From NCBI GenBank assembly GCA_950097015.1, contig CATNEN010000025.1:6448001-6512000 (forward strand): a DNA stretch of 64,000 nt. The letters run 5' to 3'. Source of the DNA: Macrostomum hystrix. Taxonomy: Eukaryota; Animalia; Platyhelminthes. Under the pieces are notes generated by a model. That model made no database searches. It saw only the letters and a list, made by a program, of their open reading frames with translations, and had not been told where the DNA came from. Positions 38-63,600 of this stretch are shown here, piece by piece; position 1 is the stretch's first letter; each line of letters starts with the position of its first letter. A program made the translations under genes and the position numbers.

Positions 38-3000
38 ATGGCCTCTTGTGAGAACGGCGTCGGCGTCAGCATTGGCGCCGGCAGTCATCCGGCAGACGGT
101 CGAAAGCGTCGCCTTCGCTATGCCATCAGCACCGAGGATGAGGACGACGAAGATGCCGCCGCGCAAGTGACGGTAAATGGAAACCAGGTACATAGCGAAG
201 ATGATGAAGAGGAGGCCGCTTCATCGGCGCTTGACAGTGGCAGGCGGAGGCACCGGCGCGCCGAGCGCTTGTCGATGCGTCGCCGGCAAAAGCGACCTCG
301 GCGTCATTTGAGACAAAGCGAGTCAGATGCGGATGAGGCGGCCGAGCAGCGGCAAGAAGAAAATCAACAGGCCGAGACTTCGGCAACAGCAGCCGACGGT
401 GTCTCCGAACCCAAGGACGAGCCGCAGTTCTCCGACATGTACACCCGGGTGAAACGGCCGCGCAAGAAGTTCATCCGGGACATGTACGGCCAGCTAGTTG
501 CCGTTGATGATCAAGGCGGCGCCAAGGACGACGATGACGACGACGACGAGGAAGACGAAGACGAGGGCGCGACGGGGGAAGACGGGCAGCAGCGCCGGAC
601 GTATCAGTTGCGGCAGCACAGACGGCGCACCGACATCTATCAGACCTCTGCGTACGAGGCCGTGCCACGGCGCAGGCGCGGTCGCGGCATCAGCGGCGGC
701 GGCATCGGCGTTGGCGGCGGCAGTCACGAGGCGTTGTTTCGTCGCCAGCGATCGCCCAGCCGGGTCAGGCGGCGTCATCGACGCTCGCTGCAGCGCAATC
801 GGCACGGTTCTTCAAGCACAGAGTCGTCGTCTTCGTCTGGTGACGGCGCTTCCTCCGACGATGACAACGCTGACGAGCGTCGTTTTCTTCGTCGCAAGAA
901 TCGCAGCATGGCCAAGGCTCGCCTCCGCTGCCTGCCCATGAATCTGGCCATGGAGGATGCCGAGCGCGGCATTCGGCGCGATCGATCAAAGATTGGCGCC
1001 AGCCTGGCTGATGTAGATCCGATGTCCATCGATACTGGCATCACATTTGAATCCATTGGCGGCTTGGGCGAACATCTGCGCTCACTAAAAGAGATGCTGG
1101 TGTTTCCTATGCTCTATCCGGAGGTGTTCTCACACCTGCGGGTCGATCCGCCTAGAGGCGTCCTGTTCTATGGTCCGCCCGGCTGCGGCAAGACCCTTGT
1201 TGCCAGGGCTCTGGCTAACGAGTGCGGCCGAGGCAAAGCTAGGCGCAAAGTGGCTTTCTTTATGCGCAAAGGCGCCGACTGTCTCAGCAAGTGGGTTGGA
1301 GAGAGCGAGCGTCAGCTCCGTCTGCTGTTCGATCAGGCCTATCAGATGCGGCCTAGCATCATCTTTTTTGACGAGATTGACGGCTTGGCGCCGGTTCGGT
1401 CAACTCGACAGGATCAAATTCACAGCTCCATCGTTAGCACCCTGCTGGCTCTGATGGACGGCTTGGACGCGCGCGGAGAGGTTGGTGCATGTTTTGATCC
1501 ATTTTTCTGCCATTACGATGAATTAACTTTCGAAGCTGTCGGCATCGGTCGTCGAGATTTTCAGCTATTGTTTTCAAAGACCCTAGTGACAAGAAAAACT
1601 AACAGTACCTCTATGGCTAATCAATATTCGTTCAATAATCCGAGTGTGTCAGTCTCAGGGACCTTTGTTCTCAGCATCCCAGGCACTAGGGTCCCCTTCA
1701 TCGACGTCTGGAGCATCGGTGGCGACAGTCGGGACCTGCAAAAAGCACCCGATGAGAACAAATGTCCCTGGGACAGATTGACATTGTTTGTGGAGCCTAC
1801 TGTTTTTCGTAGGACGTACTTTCTACGTCCTTACCAAAAATTGGTTGATAAGGACGCTTTTTATGAAATTAACACATGGTTGCTATGGAGGCTAGTGCAT
1901 AACTCACGTATTACCATTGCCCCTGTTTCCCATCCATCCCCCAGGTGATCGTGATTGGCGCCACGAATCGCTTAGACAGCATCGATCCAGCGCTGCGTCG
2001 GCCGGGACGTTTCGACCGAGAGCTGCGCTTTGCGCTGCCAGACGAAACCGCCAGACTAGAAATTCTCCGACTACACCTGGGCCATTTTAACCTGACCGAG
2101 GAGACAATGCGCTCTGTGGCCGAGTCCACCGCTGGCTACTGCGGCGCCGATCTCAAAGCGCTGAGCACCGAGGCCGGCTTGTCCGCGCTCCGCCGCGCTT
2201 ATCCTCAGATCTACTATAGCAGGGATAAGCTGCTGCTGGACAATCGACGCATCGCCGTCAGTAGCGCCGATTTAGCTGCCGCTATGGCTCGAATCCGGCC
2301 AGCCGGACAGCGCTCCACTCCGGCTGTGGCAAGGCCGCCACCCTCATATATAAGCTCGCTGTACGCCGACGCTGCCGCCGATGCGGCCGAGCGGGTCCGC
2401 AGCCTGCTGGCTGACAGGCCGGCCGGCCGACCGGCTGGCAGTCGACAACGCCTGGTCATGCTGGTCGGCCGTAGCGGCGACGGCCTCGCCAAGCACCTGG
2501 GCCCGGCCCTGCTGCACAGATTAGAATCGCTGCCAGCCCACTGCCTGGATCCGGCCGCCCTGTACGCCTCGGCGAGCGTCCGCTGCCCAGAGGAGGCCGT
2601 TGCCGATCTATTTCGCGAGTTACGCCGAGCAGCTCCGGCCGCACTGTACGTGCCAGCCTGCGACTGTCTGTTCGATTCGTTGAGCGAAACCGTTAGAAAG
2701 TGCCTGTTAGCCTGTTTGCGCGACTTTGATCCAGCCATGCCCCTGTTGGTGCTGATGACGCGAGAGTGCGGCCGGATGGACACTGAATCCGCTGACAGCG
2801 ATGAGCATATGTCACCGCCTGACTGGCTGGAGTGCTCGCCGGAGGACTTGGTGATTGTTCGAGTGCCCAGTCCAACTGAGTCGCAGAGACGAGCTTTCTT
2901 CAGCGACCTGGTGCTCGGTGCCGCCAATCCGCCAGACGAAGACGAAGGCCGTCTGGCGCCTGGCGAGCTGCCGCCAGCCGATTCTCTGCCGCCGCTGCCG

Positions 3001-4464
3001 CTGGCGCCAGCTAGTCCGCCGCCGACTCTGACGCCCTCCGAGGCCAAACGGCTGGCTCGCAGCGAGGAGGCTCAATTGCGCGAGTTAAGGATATTTTTGC
3101 GCGACACCTGCAATAAGCTGGCCAGGTATGACAATTGTCGGTGTCTGGGATACTTATAAAAATGTAGGTTTCTGGGATAATTCTTCGGGATTAAGTTTCT
3201 GGGGGATAACTCTAAGATAATTCAGGTTTTTAGGAAATTTTGGTTTCTGTAATAATTCTGGTTTTGTGATAAATTCAGGTTTTGGGATTAGTTCACGATT
3301 CTGGGATAATTAGAAACTATCTAGCCTCTGGGAGTGGTTCGTTTTTTGGGATAATTTATATAATTGTTGGTTTCCAAGTGTCTTAGAAGAGCTGCCTAAG
3401 AATAGGTGTATATGAGTATAATTATGAAAAGGTAATAAAAATTTACCAGCAATTGTAAACGCTTATTTGTACGTCGGACCCGTCTCAAACACAGGGACCG
3501 CCGCTTCTTCGTGTTCGCCAAGCCCGTCACGGACGTGGCCGACTACTACGACATCATCAAGAATCCGATGGATTTGGCAACCGTCATGGACAAGATCGAC
3601 CGCGGCCAATACTGCTGCGCCGAGGAATTCCTAGCCGACATCGACTTGATCGCGCGCAATGCCCTGGAGTACAATCCAGTTACTGACGACGAATCCGTTG
3701 CCATTCGGCATCGGGCCTGCGCCCTGCGAGACGTTGCCCAGGCTATTGTCAAGGCCGAGATGGACTCGGACTTCGAGGACGACTGTCGACGAATTAGAGA
3801 TCGCCGACGCGACGATGCCACGGCGGCGTCGACGACAACGACCACGGCTATCGAGGCGTCGACGAAGAAAACGACTGCGTCAGCCGCTGCGAATGCTGCG
3901 ACAATCGGCTGTAATAGCGTAGCAGCTCGGCATCCGCACGTCAACAATGTCAGCAACGGCGGCCTTGTTCACAATGTCTCCCGCGCCGATCGAGCCAGTC
4001 GCCGCTCCGCTGCCCCGACCGTCGCCGCGGCCGTAACAACCGCTGCTTCGACAGCGTCAGCTGAGACCGCATCGGCTGAACTAGAAGCAGCACCGACTGC
4101 CGCGCCTTCGGCCTGCAGCCCGACAACTCGCCGGTCCGTCTCGGCTTCCGCCGGATCGCCGCCGGCCCTGTCGCCGCATCGGCCGCCGACGCCTCAGCCG
4201 ATGTCGTCGCCATCGCGTCAAGAGGCCGCGATTCGAGCCCGACTGCAGAGCCTGTTGGACCAGCTGGTTGACCGCACCAATGGCCTGGCCAGGCTGCAGT
4301 TGGACTCCGTCTTCACGCGCCTATCTGACCGGCTGGCCGATTTGCGAACCAACATGGCGTCCTTGACAACCAATGCTAGTCGAGATCAGCAGCAACTGTT
4401 TGCTGGCCGCATCTGCAGCGCTATTGAAGAGTGTGTGAATGAGATTTCACCCAACTCTGACTGA
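38..4464 (+). CDS. ATAD2: ATAD2-family AAA+ ATPase with bromodomain (3 exons; 5' end may lie upstream of the window)
   Basis: Exons 38-1480, 1945-3125, 3495-4464 with GT-AG introns, joining LDARGE|VIVIGATNR and LAR|DRRFFVFAKPV. Walker A GPPGCGKT, Walker B IIFFDEID, arginine finger ALRRPGRFDRE, degenerate second AAA domain, bromodomain (YYDIIKNPMDL...LEYNP). The frame is open from position 2. Confidence 0.95.
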
Positions 4465-13649: not shown

Positions 13650-15678
13650 ATGCGCAGTCGCCGAATATCCAGTCAGCACGGTGGCACCTTCGGTCATCGA
13701 AAGCGAAGCATCCTACAGGCCCTCCAGCAGCAGCAGCAGCAGCAGCAGTCACCTCCGCCCCCAACCTCACTCCACCCAGGTCGAATCAGTAAGCTAGAAT
13801 CGGTCGCCAACGGTTTAGTCGGCCCCAGTCCGGAGGAACTCGTTGACGAAGGCAAAGCGCTGTGCCTCGAATACGTCAGCCACCGGCTCAGGCGCAGCGG
13901 TCTCCTGACGCAGAGCCAGCTGGACATCCTCGGCCCGCCAGTTGAATATAGCGAAGTTGGCGAAGAGGTGCGCCTAGTTGGCGAAGAGCTGGAGGCCATG
14001 TACCCGGACCTGTTCAAGAATGTGCACCGCCAGCTCAACTTGGCCATGCACTCCGACGAGGTCGCCCGGCGCAGCTTCGCCATGTTCGCCGACCGGCTCT
14101 GCGGCGACGGCATTCACTGGGGCAAAATTGTCGCCCTATTCGCCATGGCCGGCGCCTTCGCGGCCGACTGCGCCAGCAAAGGCCATCCGGACTACGCGCA
14201 CAAGATTGTGGACACATTCGGCCTGTTTGTGTCCACCAGGCTGTGTCCGTGGCTAAGTCAACAGGGCGGCTGGATTATAGTTGAGTACTGATTCTATTCG
14301 CATTGTTACCTTTCCTACTAGTTGTTTTAGCTTGTTAACTGAGTACACCTGTCCTAATTGGGCCAGATGTGCATCCGACATCTGTACGGCGGTTCTGCAG
14401 TCCATGGACTATGGGGAAGCCACACCCACCCTCAATTACCCCAGCTGATGCTGGTACCCATTTAACGGCTGGGTGAACTGAAGCAATGCAGAGTTAAGTG
14501 TCTTTCTAACAGACACAAATGGTTCCAGTGGAGTCGGGAATCGAACCCCCGACCTTCAAGACGTGATTCCGACGCTCTACTTACTAGTCAACAACCTCCT
14601 GTGTTCAAAAAAAGCTCATTACCGTTTAGATCTTCATAAGCGCAAATATAATACTGTTAGCAACAAAATGTGGGAGTATTTGTACGTGTACCATAGGTCT
14701 TATAGATTAAACAGCTGCTGGCCAGTTTATTGGGCTCCCATGCAGGGTTGGTCTGACGCTAAGCGGAAGTCTTAGGTAGAAACTCAATTTCTAGATTTAG
14801 ATTTGACTGCCCAATCTGTGCCTAATCTTTCCCAGGCACCGCAGCTGACTCTCTCTCAGAAATTCTCGCAGTATATTTCGCTTCCTTCCTTATGGGTTTA
14901 CAATCGCATTCATTCTGGTGCTTTAATGAACTACTCGGATTAATTCTAGCTACGGTAGCATAAACTCATTCCCAGAATATTTATTTCTCAGTTCTTAATT
15001 CTCAGTCGAATATTTCACGCACTGTTTCATCGTATGCTTCTCTGTGTTCCCTTCTTTATGATCTATTTTGTCCGTTTGAGCACAAATGTCTCTTTTACCT
15101 CTTTCATAGACTACTTTACTTTTGATATAAGATATCTATTCGTTTCTCTTTCTCTCTCTCTCCCTCTCTCTCCCTCTCTCTACCTCTCTCTCCCTCTCTC
15201 TCTGCCTCTCTCTCTGCCTCTCTCCCCCTCTTCCGCGTCTGGAGTTGCCATGGTTCGAATCCTGATTTCAATTTTTTCGATACATATCGGAATCGATTCC
15301 AACATCAGATTTTTGAAATTCAATGGGCAGTGTCCTCTCTCCTCTCTCCCACTCTCTCTCTCTCCCTCTCTCCCTCTCTCTCTCCCTCTCTCTACCTCTC
15401 TCTCTCCCTCCCTCTCCTCCTCTGCCTCCCTCTCCTTCCGTGTCTAGCATCAGTCTTCAGTTTTCGCTCCAAATCGTATTTGGGTTCAGGATTAAGCTAA
15501 TAAAAATACTCATTTTAAAATGTAGCGTAATTTAATTTAATCCGTCTTTGTCTTTGTCTTTGTTTTCCAGCCACAAGTGACCCGCAGCAACAAAGCCAGC
15601 CAGGACGAGGCCGCAACGTGGATCTGCGCTTCCCTGGCTGCACTGCTAGTCCTGGCTGGCGTTCTGTTATGCTTTTAA
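13650..15678 (+). CDS. BOK: BOK-like Bcl-2 family protein with C-terminal tail anchor
   Basis: Exon 13650-14279 carries BH4 (EELVDEGKALCLEYVSHRLRRSG), BH3 (VGEELEAMYP), BH1 of the BOK type (HWGKIVALF) and BH2 (WLSQQGGW). A phase-0 splice (GTTGAG 14280 ... TTTTCCAG 15570) joins exon 15571-15678 encoding the TM tail WICASLAALLVLAGVLLCF-stop. Confidence 0.88.
14342..14600 (-). mobile_element. tRNA-derived SINE, family A (CORE-like central domain), in BOK intron
   Basis: Reverse-complement homolog of 19860-20170; B box GGTTCGATTCC intact. Confidence 0.8.
15234..15440 (+). mobile_element. 5'-truncated copy of the hammerhead-bearing repeat (family C), starting at the ribozyme junction
   Basis: CGCGTC-TGGAGTTGCCATGGTTCGAATCC...CAATGGGCAGTGTCC plus a CT-rich tail; homologous to 29010-29146 and 29335-29490 (-). 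Lacks the CTGATGA core. Confidence 0.8.
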
Positions 15679-19640: not shown

Positions 19641-19859
19641 TACCCACCATGCCGAAAAGACAACTGGCCCCCACGGCCCACGGCCACCTAAGAATTTTAT
19701 TATTATTTTTTAGGTAAATATGGTTTCCTAATTTAACTATTTACTCGCACATCATTTCATTAATTTTCTCAGTTTATTAGGTTTCGCATTGATTTTATTG
19801 AAAATCGCTTCAAGTCTACTATGAGTATTATCTAACGCAACAGAGGTTGTAGCCTAGTA

Positions 19860-20170
19860 CAGAGGTTGTAGCCTAGTGGTTAGGGCGTCGGACTCACGAC
19901 TTGAAGGTCGGGGGTTCGATTCCCGACTCCACTGGAACAATTTGCGTCCTTTAGCAAGACACTCAACTCTGCATTGCTTCAGTTCACCCAGCTGTTAAAT
20001 GGGTACCAGCATCAGCTGGGATAATTGAAGGTGGGTGTGGCGTCCCCCCAGTCCGTGGACTGAACAGCCGTACGCAGCCTTCAGATGCGCCGCGCATTAG
20101 CTGCGGCTGTGCTGTCGGCTGCACATCTGACCCAATTGGGGCAGGTGTAATCAATTATTATTATTATTAT
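19860..20170 (+). mobile_element. Full-length tRNA-derived SINE, family A (tRNA head, CORE-like domain, (TTA)n tail)
   Basis: A box TAGCCTAGTGG, B box GGTTCGATTCC, CORE-like GTCCTTTAGCAAGACACTCAAC...CTGTTAAATGGG, (TTA)n tail, and a 14-bp TSD with one mismatch, TATTATC(T/G)AACGCA, at 19826-19839 and 20165-20178. Confidence 0.88.
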
Positions 20171-25491: not shown

Positions 25492-28400
25492 ATGACGAAT
25501 CAGAGCTCACCAGAACCGGCCTCTGTCGAGTCCCCTGCAGAAGAAAACTCGCCTTTGACTCCACGGACAGCCGTCGACGCCGCTACGGAAATCGCGGTCG
25601 ACGAATTCCAAGTCGAAGTGGAAATCGATGAGCGAGAAAGTTGGGGCACCAAAATCGACTTCCTGCTGTCAATCATTGGATTCGCCGTGGATCTGGCCAA
25701 TGTCTGGCGGTTTCCATACCTTTGCTACAAGTATGGCGGAGGCGCCTTCCTACTGCCCTACTTCCTCATGAACATCTTCCAGGTTGGTGCTATTCAAGGC
25801 ATGGTTGCACTTCCTGCACTCCCTTCACTCCCTGCACTCCCTTCACTCCCTTCACTCCCTGCACTCCCTGCACTCCCTTCACTTCCTGCACTCCCTGCAC
25901 TCCCTTCACTTCCTGCACTCCCTTCTCTCTCTACACTCCCTGCACTTCCCCCATTCCCTGCACTCCATAAAGTCACTTTACCCATCACTCCCTACCTTCC
26001 CTTGGACTCCATAAATTCCTTAAATTCCAAGCACTCATTACATTCCCATTAATCCCTACACTACCTGTATTCCTTACTCTATATAATCCTTAATAAATTG
26101 CCTACATTTCACACACTGTTCACCGCTTCCCTAGGCGGTGCCACTGTTCTACATGGAGCTTGTACTTGGCCAGGTGAATCAGCACGGCCCGATCCGGGTT
26201 TGGGACATCTGCCCGTTGGCTCGCGGCATAGGACTGGCCCAGAACCTCATGACCTATTTAGTGGCCTTCTATTACAATGTCATCATAGCGTGGTGCTTTC
26301 TGTTTCTATTCAACTCGTTCTCCATGACCACGTTGCCGTGGATGAAGTGCGACAACGCCTTCAATACGGAGTGGTGCGTCACTGTGGAGCAATACAAGAA
26401 TCTGACTGCACAGAACCGCAGCGCCAAATATGTGCTGGCTTCCGAGGAGTTCTTCGAGTGAGAGCCTCAAGGCTGGCGTGTACTTTTAGCTCGCCTATTG
26501 AATTACTAGGTATATTTCAAGCCAGTTAGGTATAGCCAACGCGTACCAAGTACAAATAACACCAGAAAGGTATAATCAACTCTTATCAGGTATAATTAAT
26601 CCCAGTAAGGTATAATCAACTCTTATCAGGTATAATTAATCCCAGTAAGGTATAATCAACTCTTATCAGGTATAATTAATCCCAGTAAGGTATAATCAAC
26701 TCTTATCAGGTATATTTAATCTCAGTCAGGTATAATTAACCCTTATGAGGTACAATTAACCCCCAGTCAGGTATGATCAAACCTTATCAGGTATAATTAA
26801 CCCTTATGAGGTACAATTAACCCCCAGTCAGGTATGATCAAACCTTATCAGGTATAATTAATGCTAATCAGGCATTATATATACTCTTTTCAGATACAAT
26901 AAGCCTCAGACAGGTGTAGTCAACCCTTATCAGGTTCAATAAAACCTAGTCAAGTATAATTAACCTGACTGACCCGGTTCCGCGGGTGCAAACCAAGTTC
27001 ACCTTTGAAACTTTCAAATTTTCAAATCTTCGTTTTTAACAAGCTTGAAAGGAAGAGGTTTTTGCTACTAGTCAACTGTAAGCGTGTAAGATTGATGTTT
27101 GCACCAATAAATTTTTTATTGGTTCCTAGGTGACAAATGTGAGTCACAAGTGATTGATTAGTTATTATATATAAAAATTCAGGTGACTTTTGATTGTTTA
27201 AAACGAATTTGCAGTGCGAACTGTGACATAAAGTACAGTAAAAATAAATTAAAATGTTCGTGTCTCTTCCAGACTACTTCCAGAAAAAAAAGTTGTGCAT
27301 AATGTATGCGATAGACTTAATCAGTGCATTATGACATGATTTAAAATACAGAACACAGTCATGTAATCAAACACATAAATACCAGACGCGGTGTCCTTGG
27401 CATCCACGAGAGCGTCGGCTTGAGCAGCCTGGGCCAGCCGCGCCTTTTGCTTGTCATCTGCTGCATGATCGTGTTCACCTGCCTGTACTTCTCCCTGTGG
27501 AAAGGTGTGAAAACCTCCGGCAAGGTCGTGTATATCACGGCCACAATGCCCTACATTCTGTTGGCCATTCTGCTAGGAAACGGTGCGAGACTGCCTGGAG
27601 CCAGCAAGGGCATCAAGTACTTTATTAGTCCCGACCTATCCAAGCTCAACTCAATTGATGTAAGTGCTTTATCCGAAATCTCAAGCATGATTTGTGTGAG
27701 CCAAGAAAATCTAGATCTTAATTGAAAAAATTAAAATGATAGACGTTTTTGGGGGTTTGGAGTGGTTTGTTCTAGAGAGCAGCTCTAGCTAATGAGCATC
27801 GAGATAAGGTTTGAGATTTTTTGTTTAAGATCGGCTCTAGCCAATGAGCGCAAAGATGCAAAGATAAGGGCTGAGATTTAAGAGGTGGTTTTTTTCAAGA
27901 TCAGCTCTAGCCAATCAGCGTAAAGATTACGGTTAAGATTCTAAATTAGGGGTGTTCAGCTCTAGCCAATAAGCGTCAGGAAAAGGGTTGAGATTTGTGG
28001 GTGGCTTGTTTAAGATCAGCTCTAGCCAATAAGCGTCAAGATAAGGGATGAGACTTGTGGGTGGCTTGTTTAAGATAAGCTCTTAGCCAATGAGCGTCAA
28101 GATTTAAGATTCGAAGCTAGTGCTAGCCGATGTGCGATGTGAAAGAGGTGTATATTTAGATTGGCATTGTTAATACGGAGAAAAAAATATGAATGAACTT
28201 TTAGCCGTGGATAGAGGCCGCCATCCAGGTGTTCTACTCAACAGGCGCCGGCTTCGGAGTTCACCTTGCCTACGCCAGCTACAGCAGGCCCAGAAACAAT
28301 TGCTATCGGGACTGCCTCATCACTGCGGCTGCCAATGCGTCTGCCAGCTTCCTAGCTGGCTTTGTGGTGTTCTCCTACCTGGGCTACATGTCCGAGGTCA

Positions 28401-31400
28401 CCGGCAAGCCGGTTGATCAAGTTACAGCTGAAGGTGAGAGAAAACTATTTGTACAGCCAATAGCTGAAACATGTAGCCAATCAGCGATGAGTCAGTTTTT
28501 TGTAAAAGGGCTTTCTAGCCAATCAGCAACAAGTTAGCTTTGAATTCTTTTTAGTGTTAGCATTTTAACAAATCAGAGAATCAGTGAATAGCTAACGGTT
28601 TTTGGATGCTTTGTAATCGGAACATTCGTACAAGAAACCTTATCCGCATGGCAACCGCAACTCCGAATTGCAGGTCCCGGTCTTGTGTTTCAAGTTTATC
28701 CAATTGCCATTGGAACTCTGCCTGTTGCGCCGCTATGGTCCATTCTGTTCTTCTCCCTGCTCATCACTCTTGGACTGGACAGCGCGGTGAGATCAAAGGG
28801 AGGGAGAGAGGGGAGAGAGATAGATAGATGGGGAATAAAGAAACGCAATCAGAGGAGGGAAGAGAGAGAGGTAAAGAGACAGGGAAAAGTGGGGATAGAG
28901 AGAGAGGGGGGGAAAAGATAGAGGGAAATAGAGGAAGAGCAAGAGGGGAAAAGAGAGACGGAGAGAGAGGGGCGAGAGAGAGAGTCGAGAGAGAGGGGTG
29001 AGAGAGAGGGAGAGAGGGAGAGAGAGAGCGGGAGAGAGGAGAGAGGACACTGCCCATTGAATTTCAAAAATCTAATGTTGGAATCTATTCCGATATGTAT
29101 CGAAAAAATTAAAATCAGGATTTGAACCAAGGCAACTCCAGACGCGTTTCGCTCTTATTGGAGCTCATCAGTAGAGTCTAGCCTAGCGCTCTAGCCTTTA
29201 GGCTATAGGCGCTTGTTCAAATCCAGCTTTCAATCTCAACATTTCGTAATCGATTCGGCAGCGCCCCGCAACTCAATCCACACTCACTCAACTCCGTGGC
29301 ACTGACTCGGTCGTACGAGACGCCGGTGCTGGCCTGAGAGAGAGGGAGAGAGGGAGAGAGGGAGAGAGACAGCGGTAGAGAGGAGAGAGGACACTGCCCA
29401 TTGAATTTAAAAAATCTAATGTTGGAATCGATTCCGATATATATCGGAAACATTGAAAGCCGGATTCGAACCAAGGCAACTCCAGACGCGTTTCGCTCTT
29501 TTCGATTTTCGATGAGAGAAAAACGATAAATAGGAGCTAAGAAGCTCCTAATATTGTGCGCTAACCAACCCCCCACCTGCATCTGACAATGGGCCGGGCA
29601 GATGGGAGGCATGGAATGCCTTCTAACCGGAGTCGGCGACCTAATCGAGAAGCCGTTGCGCAAGTACAAAAATGTGCGCGAAATTTTCACCGTCTGCGTC
29701 ATCGCCCTGGCCTTCCTAATGTCGATGTTTCTGTGCACCTCGGTGAGAACTGTCGCACAATTCTATGGGTAAAATCCTTTTGGCTATTATCGCTCACACA
29801 GTGTAGCCATTCACACAGGGCGGCATGTACGTCTGGAATCTGATGAACAATTTCTCCGCCGGCCTGTCGATCATTGTTGTGGCATTTGCGCAGGCTACAG
29901 CTGTGTCTTGGCTGTATGGTAAGGCTTATTTGCATGTGTTATCAGTGACACTCGTTCACGAGCTGTCTAAGGGCGAAATGAACTTCAATTGCGTGTGATC
30001 CATGGGCTATCCACACAATGTAGTCTATTGTCTATCCACACAGTGTAGTCTATTGTCTATCCACACAGTGTAGTCTATTGTCTATCCACACAGTGTAGTC
30101 TATTGTCTATCCACACAGTGTAGTCTATTGTCTATCCACACAGTGTAGTCTATTGTCTATCCACACAGTGTAGTCTATTGTCTATCCACACAGTGTAGTC
30201 TATTGTCTATCAACACAGTGTAGTCTATTGTCTATCCACACAGTGTAGTCTATTGTCTATCCACACAGTGTAGTCTATGGTCTATCCACACAGTGTAGTC
30301 TATGGTCTATCCACACAGTGTAATCTATGGTCTATCCACACAGTGTAGTCTATTGTCTATCCACACAGTGTAGTCTATTGTCTATCCACACAGTGTAGTC
30401 TATTGTCTATCCACACAGTGTAGTCTATTGTCTATCCACACAATGTAGTCTATTGTCTATCCACACAGTGTAGTCTATTGTCTATCCACACAGTGTAGTC
30501 TATTGTCTATCCACACAGTGTAGTCTATTGTCTATCCACACAGTGTAGTCTATTGTCTATCCACACAGTGTAGTCTATTGTCTATCCACACAGTGTAGTC
30601 TATGGTCTATCCACACAGTGTAGTCTATGGTCTATCCACACAGTGTAGTCTATGGTCTATCCACACAGTGTAGTCTATGGTCTATCCACACAGTGTAGTC
30701 TATTGTCTATCCACACAGTGTAGTCTATGGTCTATCCACACAGTGTAGTCTATTGTCTATCCACACAATGTAGTCTATTGTCTATCCACACAGTGTAGTC
30801 TATTGTCTATCCACACAGTGTAGTCTATGGTCTATCCACACAGTGTAGTCTATTGTCTATCCACACAGTGTAGTCTATGGTCTATCCACACAGTGTAGTC
30901 TATGGGCTATCCACACAGTGTAGTCTATTGTCTATCCACACAGGCTATCCACACAGTGTAGTCTATGGTCTATCCACACTGTGTATTCCATGGTCTATCC
31001 ACACAGTATAGTCTATAGTATATCCCACACTGCAGTCTTTAGTCTATCCACACTGGGTTGTCTATGGTCTATCGACACTGTGTGATGTACAGTCTAACCA
31101 CACACATCCTTCTGATAACCGCAGGCTTGGACCAGTTCTGCAAGGACATCAAGGATAATCTAGGCTTTTCACCAGGAATTTATTGGCGCCTATGTTGGAA
31201 ATTCGTGTCGCCAGTTTTCATTCTGGTAAGAGAAGCGTCGGTAATATTTGCGCAACTCGATTGTTATTAAAGCTAATTTGCGCGCATCTTCTAGGTGATT
31301 ATCGTGTTCAACTGCGTGATCCTGATGGACTCGTCCAGTTTTCTGTACTTCTACAAGTACACCGAGTATCATCCGGAGCTGTTTTCGAATCGTACAGCTG

Positions 31401-37396: not shown

Positions 37397-55895
<18,499 letters not shown>

Positions 55896-60600: not shown

Positions 60601-63600
60601 CGGGTCGACTGGCCGAGCGGTGAGCCACCCCACTCTCGCACCAAGGTCCCCGAGCCCGAATCCACATTCATTTTGGGCGCAGCCGTGAAGAGAAGGCTTT
60701 TGGGCTTGAAGTGAAATTCGAGCCACCCCACAACCCGCAACCGCAAAACCGGCACCCCAAAAACCCACATACCCATGACCCGCCACCCCATGACCCGCCA
60801 CCCAAAGACCCGCCACCCCATGACCCGCCACCCAAAGACCCGCCACCCCATGACCCGCCACCCCAAAACCCGCCACCCCATGACCCGCCACCACATAACC
60901 CGCCACCCCATGACCCGCCACCCCATAACCCGCCACCCTATGACCCGCCACCCCATAACCCGCCACCCAAAGACCCGCCACCCTATGACCCGCCACCCCA
61001 TAACCCGCCACCCCATGACCCGCCACCCCATAACCCGCCACCCTATGACCCGCCACCCCATAACCCGCCACCCTATGACCCGCCACCCTATGACCCGCCA
61101 CCCCATGACCCGCCACCCAAAGACCCGCCACCCCATGACCCGCCACCCCAAAACCCGCCACCCCATGACCCGCCACCACATAACCCGCCACCCCATAACC
61201 CGCCACCCCATGACCCGCCACCCCATGACCCGCCACCCAAAGACCCGCCACCCCATGACCCGCCACCCCAAAACCCGCCACCCCATGACCCGCCACCACA
61301 TAACCCGCCACCCCATGACCCGCCACCCCATAACCCGCCACCCTATGACCCGCCACCCTATGACCCGCCACCCCATGACCCGCTACCCCATGACGACCCA
61401 ACGACCCGCGGCCGCCATCGCAAGTTTTCCAACCCCCGATTTCGCCAACCCAGTGCGCAGAGGAGGAGGAGACGCGTGACCTTGTGCGGTCCTACGATGG
61501 TCTGGAGCCTATGGTCAGCCTGCTGGGCAAGACGGACAACAAGGAGCTGCTGTCGGCGGCCACAGGAGCCATCTGGAAGTGCTCCATGTCGCCAAAGAAC
61601 ATTCAGAAGTTTCAGGAGTTGAACGTCATCGAAAAACTGGTCCGCCTGCTCAGCGATCAGCCAGAAGAGGTGAGTAAATGGTTTTCAGTTTTTGTCTTCT
61701 TTTTATTGAGTTTCTCTTGTTTTGGCGGAAATTTCTTTAGCTTAATTTCATACTGCTGCTAGTAGCATGTGCGAGTTCTTCAGATTCCTTTTGCTTTGTT
61801 GCAATGCACATTATCTTAACTAAAGAAATTTATGTTTTAAGCAAGTCATCTTTTTTAATTAAAAAAATATGATCGTGCCTTGAAAAAATACAAATCGAAA
61901 TTTATAAACAAACGAAAAAAATTATTTTCGTTTATACGCTTTCGAAACCCACGCAAACCTGTTTTTCGTTTCAGCCTAAAATTTGCCTCGATTTTTTACC
62001 TTTTTAATTGCTTTTTGCTTAATCAACACAGGAAGTAGCAGACAGTGTTATAATTTATGGACCTTCCACATTTGCAGCAATGGGAGCCTGTGGGTTCGAA
62101 CCATCGACCTCCCTATGTAAATCTGGAGCAGCATTTGGGCACACAACAGCCTCTGCGTTTCCTATAAACCTAGTTCGAAGTTTTCAAAATCAAGCCTAGC
62201 AACAAAGCATGCCCAGAAATTTCCACATTTTAACCTGTTTGCATGGTCGATTTTTTCCTGAATTTATTTATACCTTTTACCGATTTTTAAACCATCCTAC
62301 TGACCCGGACGAAATGCAAGTAGTGTAGATGAATATGCTTGCCTATTTGATAAAAATTCCAGAACAGATGGTGGAGCATGGACCCTGATCTGTTGCTAAC
62401 TTCCATGGGATATAATGTGCGTGCGTTGCAGCCTAAAGCCACGCCAATGATAATCCCTAATCCCAATCTTCTAATCACAGATTTCTGTCAGTGCACGAAC
62501 GAGAGAAATTATCACTTGGCTTTATATACTTGCTTGTCACCCGCCTTGCTTTAAAACTGATCTCAAATCCCATTTTTAATCAGAAGAAAATAACTTGAAA
62601 TCGAAATTACTCAATTTCAGAGGTAGGCTGATTGAGGAACCTTACCTTCTTGTGTTCACCTAAAAATCACAATCACATTTTTGGGTCATTTTACTGCCTC
62701 ACAAATCTGTCAAGTATTTATAATTTTTTTATACCAGTGTAAGAGAACCCGACGTTGTTACGTGTTAGACATTGATTTCTTGCAGGAAAATGTTTTGTGT
62801 GCAAACACACGTACAATGTAAAAAAACTACGTCATAGATGACGCTTGAGTAAAAACGTTTGCAAGCGTATTACGGTAGAATAATAAAAATACTTACTTGT
62901 TAGAAATACTAATATTAGTAATTGTCGATAGTTTTAGTGCGCAAAAGTAAACAAAAAAACACGACAGGGAAATTTTTGTAATTCAGGAAAGAGTTTAAAG
63001 ATAAAAAAATCGAAAAAACTTGATTTCCAAATGTAAATTTCTTTAAAATCTAAGATTTCTTTAAAATGCAATATTACATGGAAATCTAAGGCTTTTCAGC
63101 AATCAGAGGCTTCTTGGAAATCGATGATTTCTTCGAAAGCAATGGTTTCTCGGAAGTAGGTGGCATCTTGGAAAAGAAACAAAATTGATAGCTTTTTAGA
63201 TATCAATGATTTTTCGGAAATCAATTACTCCTTAGAGATCTTCGGTTTCTTTTACAAAAAATGATATGGTAAACATAGTTTCCTTCGAAAAATCCGAAGA
63301 TTTCTTAGAAACCGAAGATTTCTTAAAAACCGAATATTTCTTAGAAACGAAGATTTCTTAAAAACCGAAGATTTCTTAGAAACCGAAGATTTATTAGAAA
63401 CCGAAGATTTCTTAAAAACCGAAGATTTCTTAGAAACCGAAGATTTCTTAAAAACCGAAGATTTCTTAGAAACGAAGATTTCTTAAAAACCGAAGATTTC
63501 TTAGAAACCGAAGATTTCTTAAAAACCGAAGATTTCTTAGAAACGAAGATTTCTTAAAAACCGAAGATTTCTTAGAAACCGAAGATTTCTTAAAAACCGA

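Follow-up and report, generated by a model that had tools for sequence, protein, structure and literature searches.

Metazoan non-LTR retrozymes (LTR, long terminal repeat) are noncoding tandem repeats of 170 to 400 nucleotides (nt) with self-paired circular RNAs that are circularized by tRNA ligase, and they have been reported in many invertebrate phyla (PMC7229834). They seem to lack promoters (PMC7761336), and it has been argued that they are nonautonomous derivatives of Penelope-like elements (10.64898/2026.07.22.740005), which show an insertion bias for microsatellites (PMC8557442). The canonical metazoan type I hammerhead ribozyme has a helix I of 6 base pairs (bp) (range, 6 to 7), a helix II of 4 bp, and a helix III of 1 to 2 bp with a small palindromic loop, and it acts as a dimer; the minimal hammerhead ribozymes (min-HHRs) of Penelope-like elements have a helix II of 7 to 8 bp and a helix I of 4 to 5 bp (PMC4209133). 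In the accounts of the Schistosoma element Sm-alpha on which we draw, at least two tandem units are needed for propagation (PMC6765202, PMC2770079). Here we describe a hammerhead-bearing repeat from the flatworm Macrostomum hystrix, located in an intron of a gene of the SNF/SLC6 family within a 64,000-nt stretch of contig CATNEN010000025.1 (assembly GCA_950097015.1, positions 6,448,001 to 6,512,000 of the forward strand). This whole stretch is called the window below, and all coordinates are positions within it. The locus is most likely an old insertion of a small nonautonomous retroelement of the metazoan non-LTR retrozyme or Sm-alpha-like kind, a kind of element that is already known from many invertebrates.

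The hammerhead and its 344-nt repeat unit

The 45 nt from 29178 to 29134 on the minus strand, in which the initial annotation had recognized a hammerhead, read exactly as quoted there. The 5' part of the motif consists of the helix I 5' strand GACUCUA, the core CUGAUGA, and helix II (GCUC/GAGC) with the loop CAAUAA; the 3' part consists of GAAA, the palindrome ACGCGU with C17 at 29141, and the helix I 3' strand UGGAGUU. All of the core positions are intact, including CUGANGA, GAAA, the U-H cleavage dinucleotide, G10.1-C11.1, and A15.1-U16.1, and the description of CUGAUGA and GAAA as canonical was correct. Both of the stems that had been said to pair do so: helix I forms 7/7 pairs, two of them G-U, and past a UA bulge AGGC/GCCU adds another 4 bp, while helix II is 4 bp long. 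The three helices are arranged round the core and are open at helix I. Helix III comprises an A-U and a C-G pair around a 2-nt loop within the perfect 6-nt palindrome ACGCGU; it cannot close as a hairpin and is stable only between two copies. Judged by its sequence and predicted fold, the motif is a real and complete type I hammerhead.

The bare pattern CTGATGA..CGAAAC was found once against 0.07 occurrences expected. A full structural descriptor, which combined the core, G10.1-C11.1, a 4-bp helix II, at least 5/6 helix I pairs, and the UH dinucleotide, had a single match in the 64-kb window. When Rfam was searched, as the initial annotation had proposed, the hammerhead was matched by Hammerhead_HH9 (RF02275) with 38.4 bits and an E value of 9.8e-8 (1.8 kb searched). 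The match extends into the distal helix I extension (Table 1), and its alignment contains a 5-position deletion where the model expects a longer helix III hairpin. Further Rfam matches near the hammerhead, to SNORD66 and sR39, had E values above 1 and were discarded as chance.

The ribozyme closes a 344-nt unit, and the array amounts to 1.45 tandem units that extend along the minus strand from 29500 to about 29002 and run into a CT-rich tract that continues to about 28800. An exact second occurrence of the 22 nt that span the helix II 3' strand to the helix I 3' strand is found at 29499 to 29478. The array starts 16 nt 5' of the upstream cleavage junction (29485/29484), and the upstream copy, without CUGAUGA, could serve only as a substrate. 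The stretch 5' of 29500 was considered as a decayed 5' half of the ribozyme and rejected, with about 8 of 21 positions matching. A third, solitary fragment of the family elsewhere in the window (Table 1) follows directly on CGCGTC, the final 6 nt ahead of a junction, and has (CT)n on both sides. The CT tract at 28800 to 29046 consists of the unit's own CU tract plus a presumed (CT)n target. The two insertions, which are independent, have the same kind of ends, with the 3' end in a CT tract and the 5' end just past a cleavage junction.

As is described for retrozymes, the locus has no coding capacity, LTRs, primer binding site, or polypurine tract. No Pfam domain was found in an open reading frame (ORF) that overlaps the unit (29217 to 29738), and no inverted repeats were found within 27500 to 31000. 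Two smaller symmetries were observed in passing. An 18-nt palindrome (TTCCGATATATATCGGAA) lies inside the unit at 29433 to 29450 on the minus strand, and the other copies keep its equivalent with one change. A perfect 8-bp hairpin (TAGGAGCT TCTT AGCTCCTA) is located in the intron just 5' of the element start (29501 to 29545, minus strand).

Under the favored explanation, a retrozyme-like insertion, multimeric transcripts would be cut by their hammerheads, with the ACGCGU palindrome supplying a helix III between molecules, as in the life cycle given in the literature. A reverse transcriptase, most likely that of a Penelope-like element, would then turn the cut RNAs into DNA again, and it is this step that would give rise to partial tandems. 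Rolling-circle or multimer templating would be consistent with an array that crosses one junction and stops 16 nt past the second, as well as with a solitary fragment that stops 6 nt past its junction. Priming may have taken place in the CU tract, and the single complete ribozyme may pair with the upstream junction across the rod-like fold predicted for the unit (see below) and cut at 29485/29484. The link to retrozymes and Penelope-like elements that the initial annotation had drawn agrees with the literature and with the 344-nt partial tandem, the lack of an ORF, and the rod-like RNA, and its statement that such hammerheads tend to cleave as dimers is borne out by the same sources (PMC4209133, PMC7229834).

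Several points weigh against this explanation. The Rfam check fell short in that the HH9 score is under the gathering score of 52, and no hammerhead was called at the Rfam gathering thresholds; we take much of the shortfall to be due to the absence of the model's longer helix III. There is one complete ribozyme only, so that the locus does not show the defining tandem of ribozymes. The G+C content of the unit (50.3%) lies at the upper edge of the less than 45 to 50% of metazoan retrozymes. No Penelope-like ORF was found near the element, the rest of the window not having been searched for one. Transcription, cleavage, and circles of the unit are predictions only, and the ribozyme strand, which runs antisense to the host gene, cannot arise by read-through from that gene's promoter. 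Finally, the two tandem copies differ by 7%. The insertion is considered old because of this divergence, at which an intact 45-nt motif is expected by luck about 1 time in 5 (p ~0.2), and the intact hammerhead is therefore no argument for selection. Likewise, that the repeat's first 34 nt contain no mismatch (p ~0.09) is no evidence of selection.

The age of the locus and its 7% divergence, the score below the Rfam gathering threshold, and the unremarkable thermodynamic z-scores of the isolated motif (-0.8 to -1.4) would all fit a chance match or a dead relic in which the ribozyme shape has no meaning. We give this explanation hardly any credence. None of 300 dinucleotide-shuffled windows contained a match to the full descriptor, the motif stands exactly at the unit junction, and a second copy of its 3' half occurs 344 nt upstream. 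A chance match is excluded. A relic at this locus is compatible with the retrozyme-like insertion that we favor, and chance is not.

Predicted fold and cleavage site, and promoter-like boxes

A circular minimum free energy (MFE) of -122.8 kcal/mol was calculated for the 344-nt unit, compared to -96.4 +/- 5.6 kcal/mol for shuffled sequences (z = -4.7; 0 of 200 as good), and the unit RNA is predicted to be a rod with the hammerhead at one end. In this fold, the arm that follows the cleavage site pairs with the arm that precedes the ribozyme, including a helix of 20 bp, and the CU-rich tract is matched by a G/U-rich stretch on the opposite arm.

In the unconstrained MFE fold of a transcript from 29520 to 29100, the helix I 5' strand pairs with the upstream substrate at 7/7 positions. 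Imposing the full hammerhead with a 6-bp helix III of the intermolecular type costs 1 kcal/mol; a monomeric fold imposed at the site of the ribozyme itself (29141/29140) costs 8 kcal/mol. At that site helix III has 1 to 2 bp, and a partner ribozyme downstream is absent. In a double hammerhead, the cleavage strand of one copy is acted on by another copy's catalytic strands. Here the catalytic strands are found in the downstream copy only, and the upstream copy supplies the cleavage strand only. The order of transcription points the same way. Because the folding energies and the order of transcription favor the upstream junction, we predict cutting at 29485/29484 and at most weak cutting at 29141/29140. 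The initial annotation had placed the cut at the latter position, where the formal site indeed lies, but the favored fold moves it one unit upstream.

Monomeric cleavage is within reach of newt hammerheads whose helix I extension bears an internal loop (PMC6155905), and by analogy some monomeric activity of the hammerhead described here is possible. Efficient release of 344-nt monomers from the locus is unlikely on the predicted fold, because no complete unit follows downstream, and the locus is probably a dead-end copy and not a source of circular RNA. It illustrates how a lone ribozyme, able to cut the neighboring junction only, can remain from a partial tandem.

The hammerhead lies between an A-box-like motif and a B box 77 nt apart. 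The A-box-like motif is part of an 18-mer that matches 14 of 18 D-arm positions of a tRNA-headed short interspersed element (SINE) resident in the window, and from these matches both boxes are probably tRNA derived. Across 128 kb (both strands), an A box followed by a B box was found only here and at the tRNA-headed SINE, and the B-box motif itself has 6 occurrences in the window, compared to an expected 0.65. If the boxes were used, a transcript made by RNA polymerase III (Pol III) would stop long before the end of the full unit.

The pairing of the boxes and its rarity, the excess of B boxes, and the T4 and T6 runs after the B box would suit a stand-alone Pol III gene, in which a tRNA-like transcript of about 110 nt would carry the ribozyme and serve a host function. 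We consider such a gene very improbable. ARAGORN detected no tRNA, whether it was given the native sequence, was set to allow introns, or was run on 396 ribozyme-excision variants; in the control, the head of the resident SINE was likewise called only at a lowered threshold. The Rfam tRNA model was silent at the ribozyme and boxes in the 1.8 kb searched. Moreover, in the predicted rod the B-box region is taken up as one strand of the 20-bp helix. The sequence is also repetitive, and of its three copies two have T4 to T6 runs after the B box and the third has none.

Returning to the retrozyme-like insertion, it is possible, if rather doubtful, that the family is a retrozyme that jointly has three undescribed features. 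First, it may carry its own tRNA-derived Pol III promoter, with the A and B boxes split by the cleavage site, and the promoter would therefore be whole only in a circle-derived or tandem DNA copy. Second, working across the predicted rod, the ribozyme may target the junction at the unit's opposite end. Third, the CU tract may anneal to nicked (CT)n/(GA)n microsatellites and so prime reverse transcription. If true, such priming would explain both insertions in the window, with their CT-rich ends and their stops 6 to 16 nt past a cleavage junction.

The tRNA-headed SINE itself is present in two copies (19862 to 20100 on the plus strand and 14380 to 14600 on the minus strand) that have a common body, including the core "GTTAAATGGGTACCAGC." Its head, of which the first 20 nt are duplicated at 19840 to 19861, scores 31.8 bits with the Rfam tRNA model and is called tRNA-Val(CAC) by ARAGORN only at the lowered threshold. 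This tRNA-like head (19862 to 19931) is the sole Rfam match in the window at gathering thresholds. A further B-box match (GGTTCGAACCC) at 62092 to 62102 on the minus strand, without an obvious A box or tRNA, may be a decayed SINE head.

Host intron and other features of the window

The host gene was recognized from SNF/SLC6 exons on the plus strand starting at 25492 and 27420, followed by exons at 28229 to 28537, 28685 to 28786, about 29602 to 29772, 29825 to 29998, and 31058 to 31270. The element and the CT tract fill most of an intron of about 820 nt, and the element is antisense to the gene. The antisense position given in the initial annotation therefore stands for an SLC6 intron, but the label "dopamine transporter" is not established: the host exon is about 55% identical to the Drosophila dopamine transporter (DAT), and SERT and NET score about as well. 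The effect on the host gene is probably that of a mere intron insertion, by which a short intron was lengthened about sevenfold. Coordinates are collected in Table 1.

Table 1. Coordinates of the hammerhead, its repeat unit, and associated features in the window
Feature	Position	Strand	Details
Complete type I hammerhead ribozyme	29134-29178	-	Own cleavage site after C29141 (between 29141 and 29140)
Rfam Hammerhead_HH9 match	29118-29189	-	Includes distal helix I extension (AGGC/GCCU after UA bulge)
One unit, cleavage junction to cleavage junction	29141-29484	-	344 nt; noncoding; G+C, 50.3%
Upstream ribozyme copy, 3' half only	29478-29500	-	Helix II 3' strand, GAAA, ACGCGU, C17 at 29485, helix I 3' strand
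Direct repeat, upstream copy	29346-29500	-	155 nt
Direct repeat, downstream copy	29002-29156	-	155 nt; 93% identical to upstream copy; spacing, 344 nt
Internal CU-rich tract of unit	29336-29390	-	
Long CT-rich tract	28800-29046	-	Array ends inside; 13 nt from intron 5' splice site
Third, solitary family fragment	15234-15390	+	Unit positions 1-149 (15240-15390); 90% identity
A-box-like motif	29195-29205	-	9/11 matches to TRGCNNAGTGG
B box	29118-29128	-	10/11 matches; 12 nt 3' of cleavage site
B-box copy	29462-29472	-	11/11 matches
B-box copy	15252-15262	+	11/11 matches
T4 and T6 runs just after B box	29103-29114	-	Resemble Pol III terminator; further T5 run at 29066-29070
SNF/SLC6 exon ending at GT donor 28787	28685-28786	+	Next exon from about 29602-29608

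Other introns of the SLC6 gene are also repetitive. About 37 copies of a 25-bp unit (CTATCCACACAGTGTAGTCTATTGT, 97% matches) at 30007 to 31104 fill the next intron, between the exons at 29825 to 29998 and 31058 to 31270, and repeats of about 55 to 60 bp with a CCAAT-containing motif (GCTCTAGCCAATNAGCG) were found in SLC6 introns at 27769 to 28103 and 28474 to 28541. Farther away, positions 40000 to 45000 form a strand-asymmetric stretch (GC skew, -0.50; AT skew, -0.46; 36% G+C) with very long overlapping ORFs in all three plus-strand frames and internal repeats every ~600 to 1,280 bp; it has the look of a long tandem array, not of a gene. An ATAD2-like gene at 38 to 4464 on the plus strand encodes an AAA ATPase domain, an AAA lid, and a bromodomain in unusually long exons with 57% G+C. 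Its ORF is 53 to 61% identical to vertebrate and arthropod sequences, in matches that cover about half of the query, with up to about 80% identity over the AAA domain alone.

Comparison with described hammerhead elements

In de la Pena's nomenclature, the hammerhead is a canonical metazoan type I ribozyme and not a min-HHR. The initial annotation had called it a minimal type I hammerhead; it is a complete type I, but its architecture is the canonical metazoan one and not that of the min-HHRs of Penelope-like elements. It does have in common with the min-HHRs of Penelope-like pseudo-LTRs (PMC4209133) the type I topology, a palindromic helix III region, partial tandems, and a microsatellite context. 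Moreover, Penelope-like elements carry hammerheads in pseudo-LTRs, form partial tandems, are mostly 5' truncated, and prefer microsatellites (PMC4209133, PMC8557442, 10.64898/2026.07.22.740005), and the unit could on these grounds be the terminal repeat, or pseudo-LTR, of a 5'-truncated autonomous Penelope-like element instead of a dedicated nonautonomous retrozyme. We regard this as improbable, since the helix II of 4 bp and the helix I of 7 bp are not those of a min-HHR (PMC4209133), the overlapping ORF contains no coding remnant by Pfam, and the unit is a closed 344-nt predicted rod. In addition, min-HHRs flank an ORF for reverse transcriptase and endonuclease, whereas the flanks here are SLC6 exons and intron.

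Rfam Hammerhead_HH9, an amniote intronic ribozyme, agrees with the hammerhead at 25 of 26 positions in the core, helix II, and loop 2, and both have an internal loop in helix I. In contrast to the HH9 ribozymes, which have a helix III hairpin and lie in sense orientation in conserved introns, the hammerhead described here has a 2-bp palindromic helix III and is antisense, inside a repeat. As in newt satellite 2 and other double hammerheads (PMC6155905), helix III is unstable, and activity would be expected through pairing of two copies or through the internally looped, extended helix I. Unlike in newt satellite 2, the partner copy is without the catalytic half, and only a one-sided arrangement would be possible.

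The combination of the core with ACGCGU is a real and widespread class. A scan of public metagenome contigs with a pattern that left helix II largely free, and of which helix I was not part, returned 47 loci with 32 distinct ribozymes. At least 5/6 helix I pairs form in 91% of these, compared to 12% in a mismatched-partner null, across 26 different helix I sequences, and both of the free helix II pairs form in 28 of the 32. It is because helix I pairing is kept in most of the 32 distinct ribozymes that we consider the architecture real and widespread. None of the 47 loci belongs to the family of the 344-nt unit. A or B boxes were found in none of the 32 metagenome ribozymes, and the boxes are therefore not general to the ACGCGU ribozyme class.

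Base composition across the window ranges from 39 to 58% G+C and does not resemble that of schistosome genomes, which are low in G+C. Going by their published descriptions, the Schistosoma SINE-like elements Sm-alpha and Sj-alpha are repeats of about 335 bp that bear a canonical type I hammerhead, as does the locus, and have tRNA-derived Pol III promoter boxes (PMC6765202, PMC2770079), to which the probably tRNA-derived boxes here would correspond. As far as these descriptions go, the Sm-alpha promoter lies wholly upstream of the ribozyme, whereas here the A and B boxes stand on either side of the cleavage site, and Sm-alpha copies are identified as tRNA-Gln pseudogenes by tRNAscan-SE, whereas no tRNA is detectable here.

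Like the metazoan non-LTR retrozymes (PMC7229834), the locus has a canonical type I hammerhead whose helix III is short and palindromic, a 344-nt unit that falls within their size range and is in partial tandem, no coding capacity, and a predicted RNA that is highly self-paired. It differs from them in that the tandem comprises 1.45 units with one complete ribozyme, the second being a 3' half. It differs further in having tRNA-type A and B boxes on either side of the ribozyme, retrozymes being said to carry no promoters (PMC7761336); if functional, this arrangement would contradict the published view of promoterless retrozymes. The one-sided double hammerhead, the shared ends of the insertions, and the split boxes are specific to this locus and do not make it exceptional. 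Surveyed across the genome, the shared end structure could serve to test whether animal retrozymes home to microsatellites and are reverse transcribed by a rolling-circle route.

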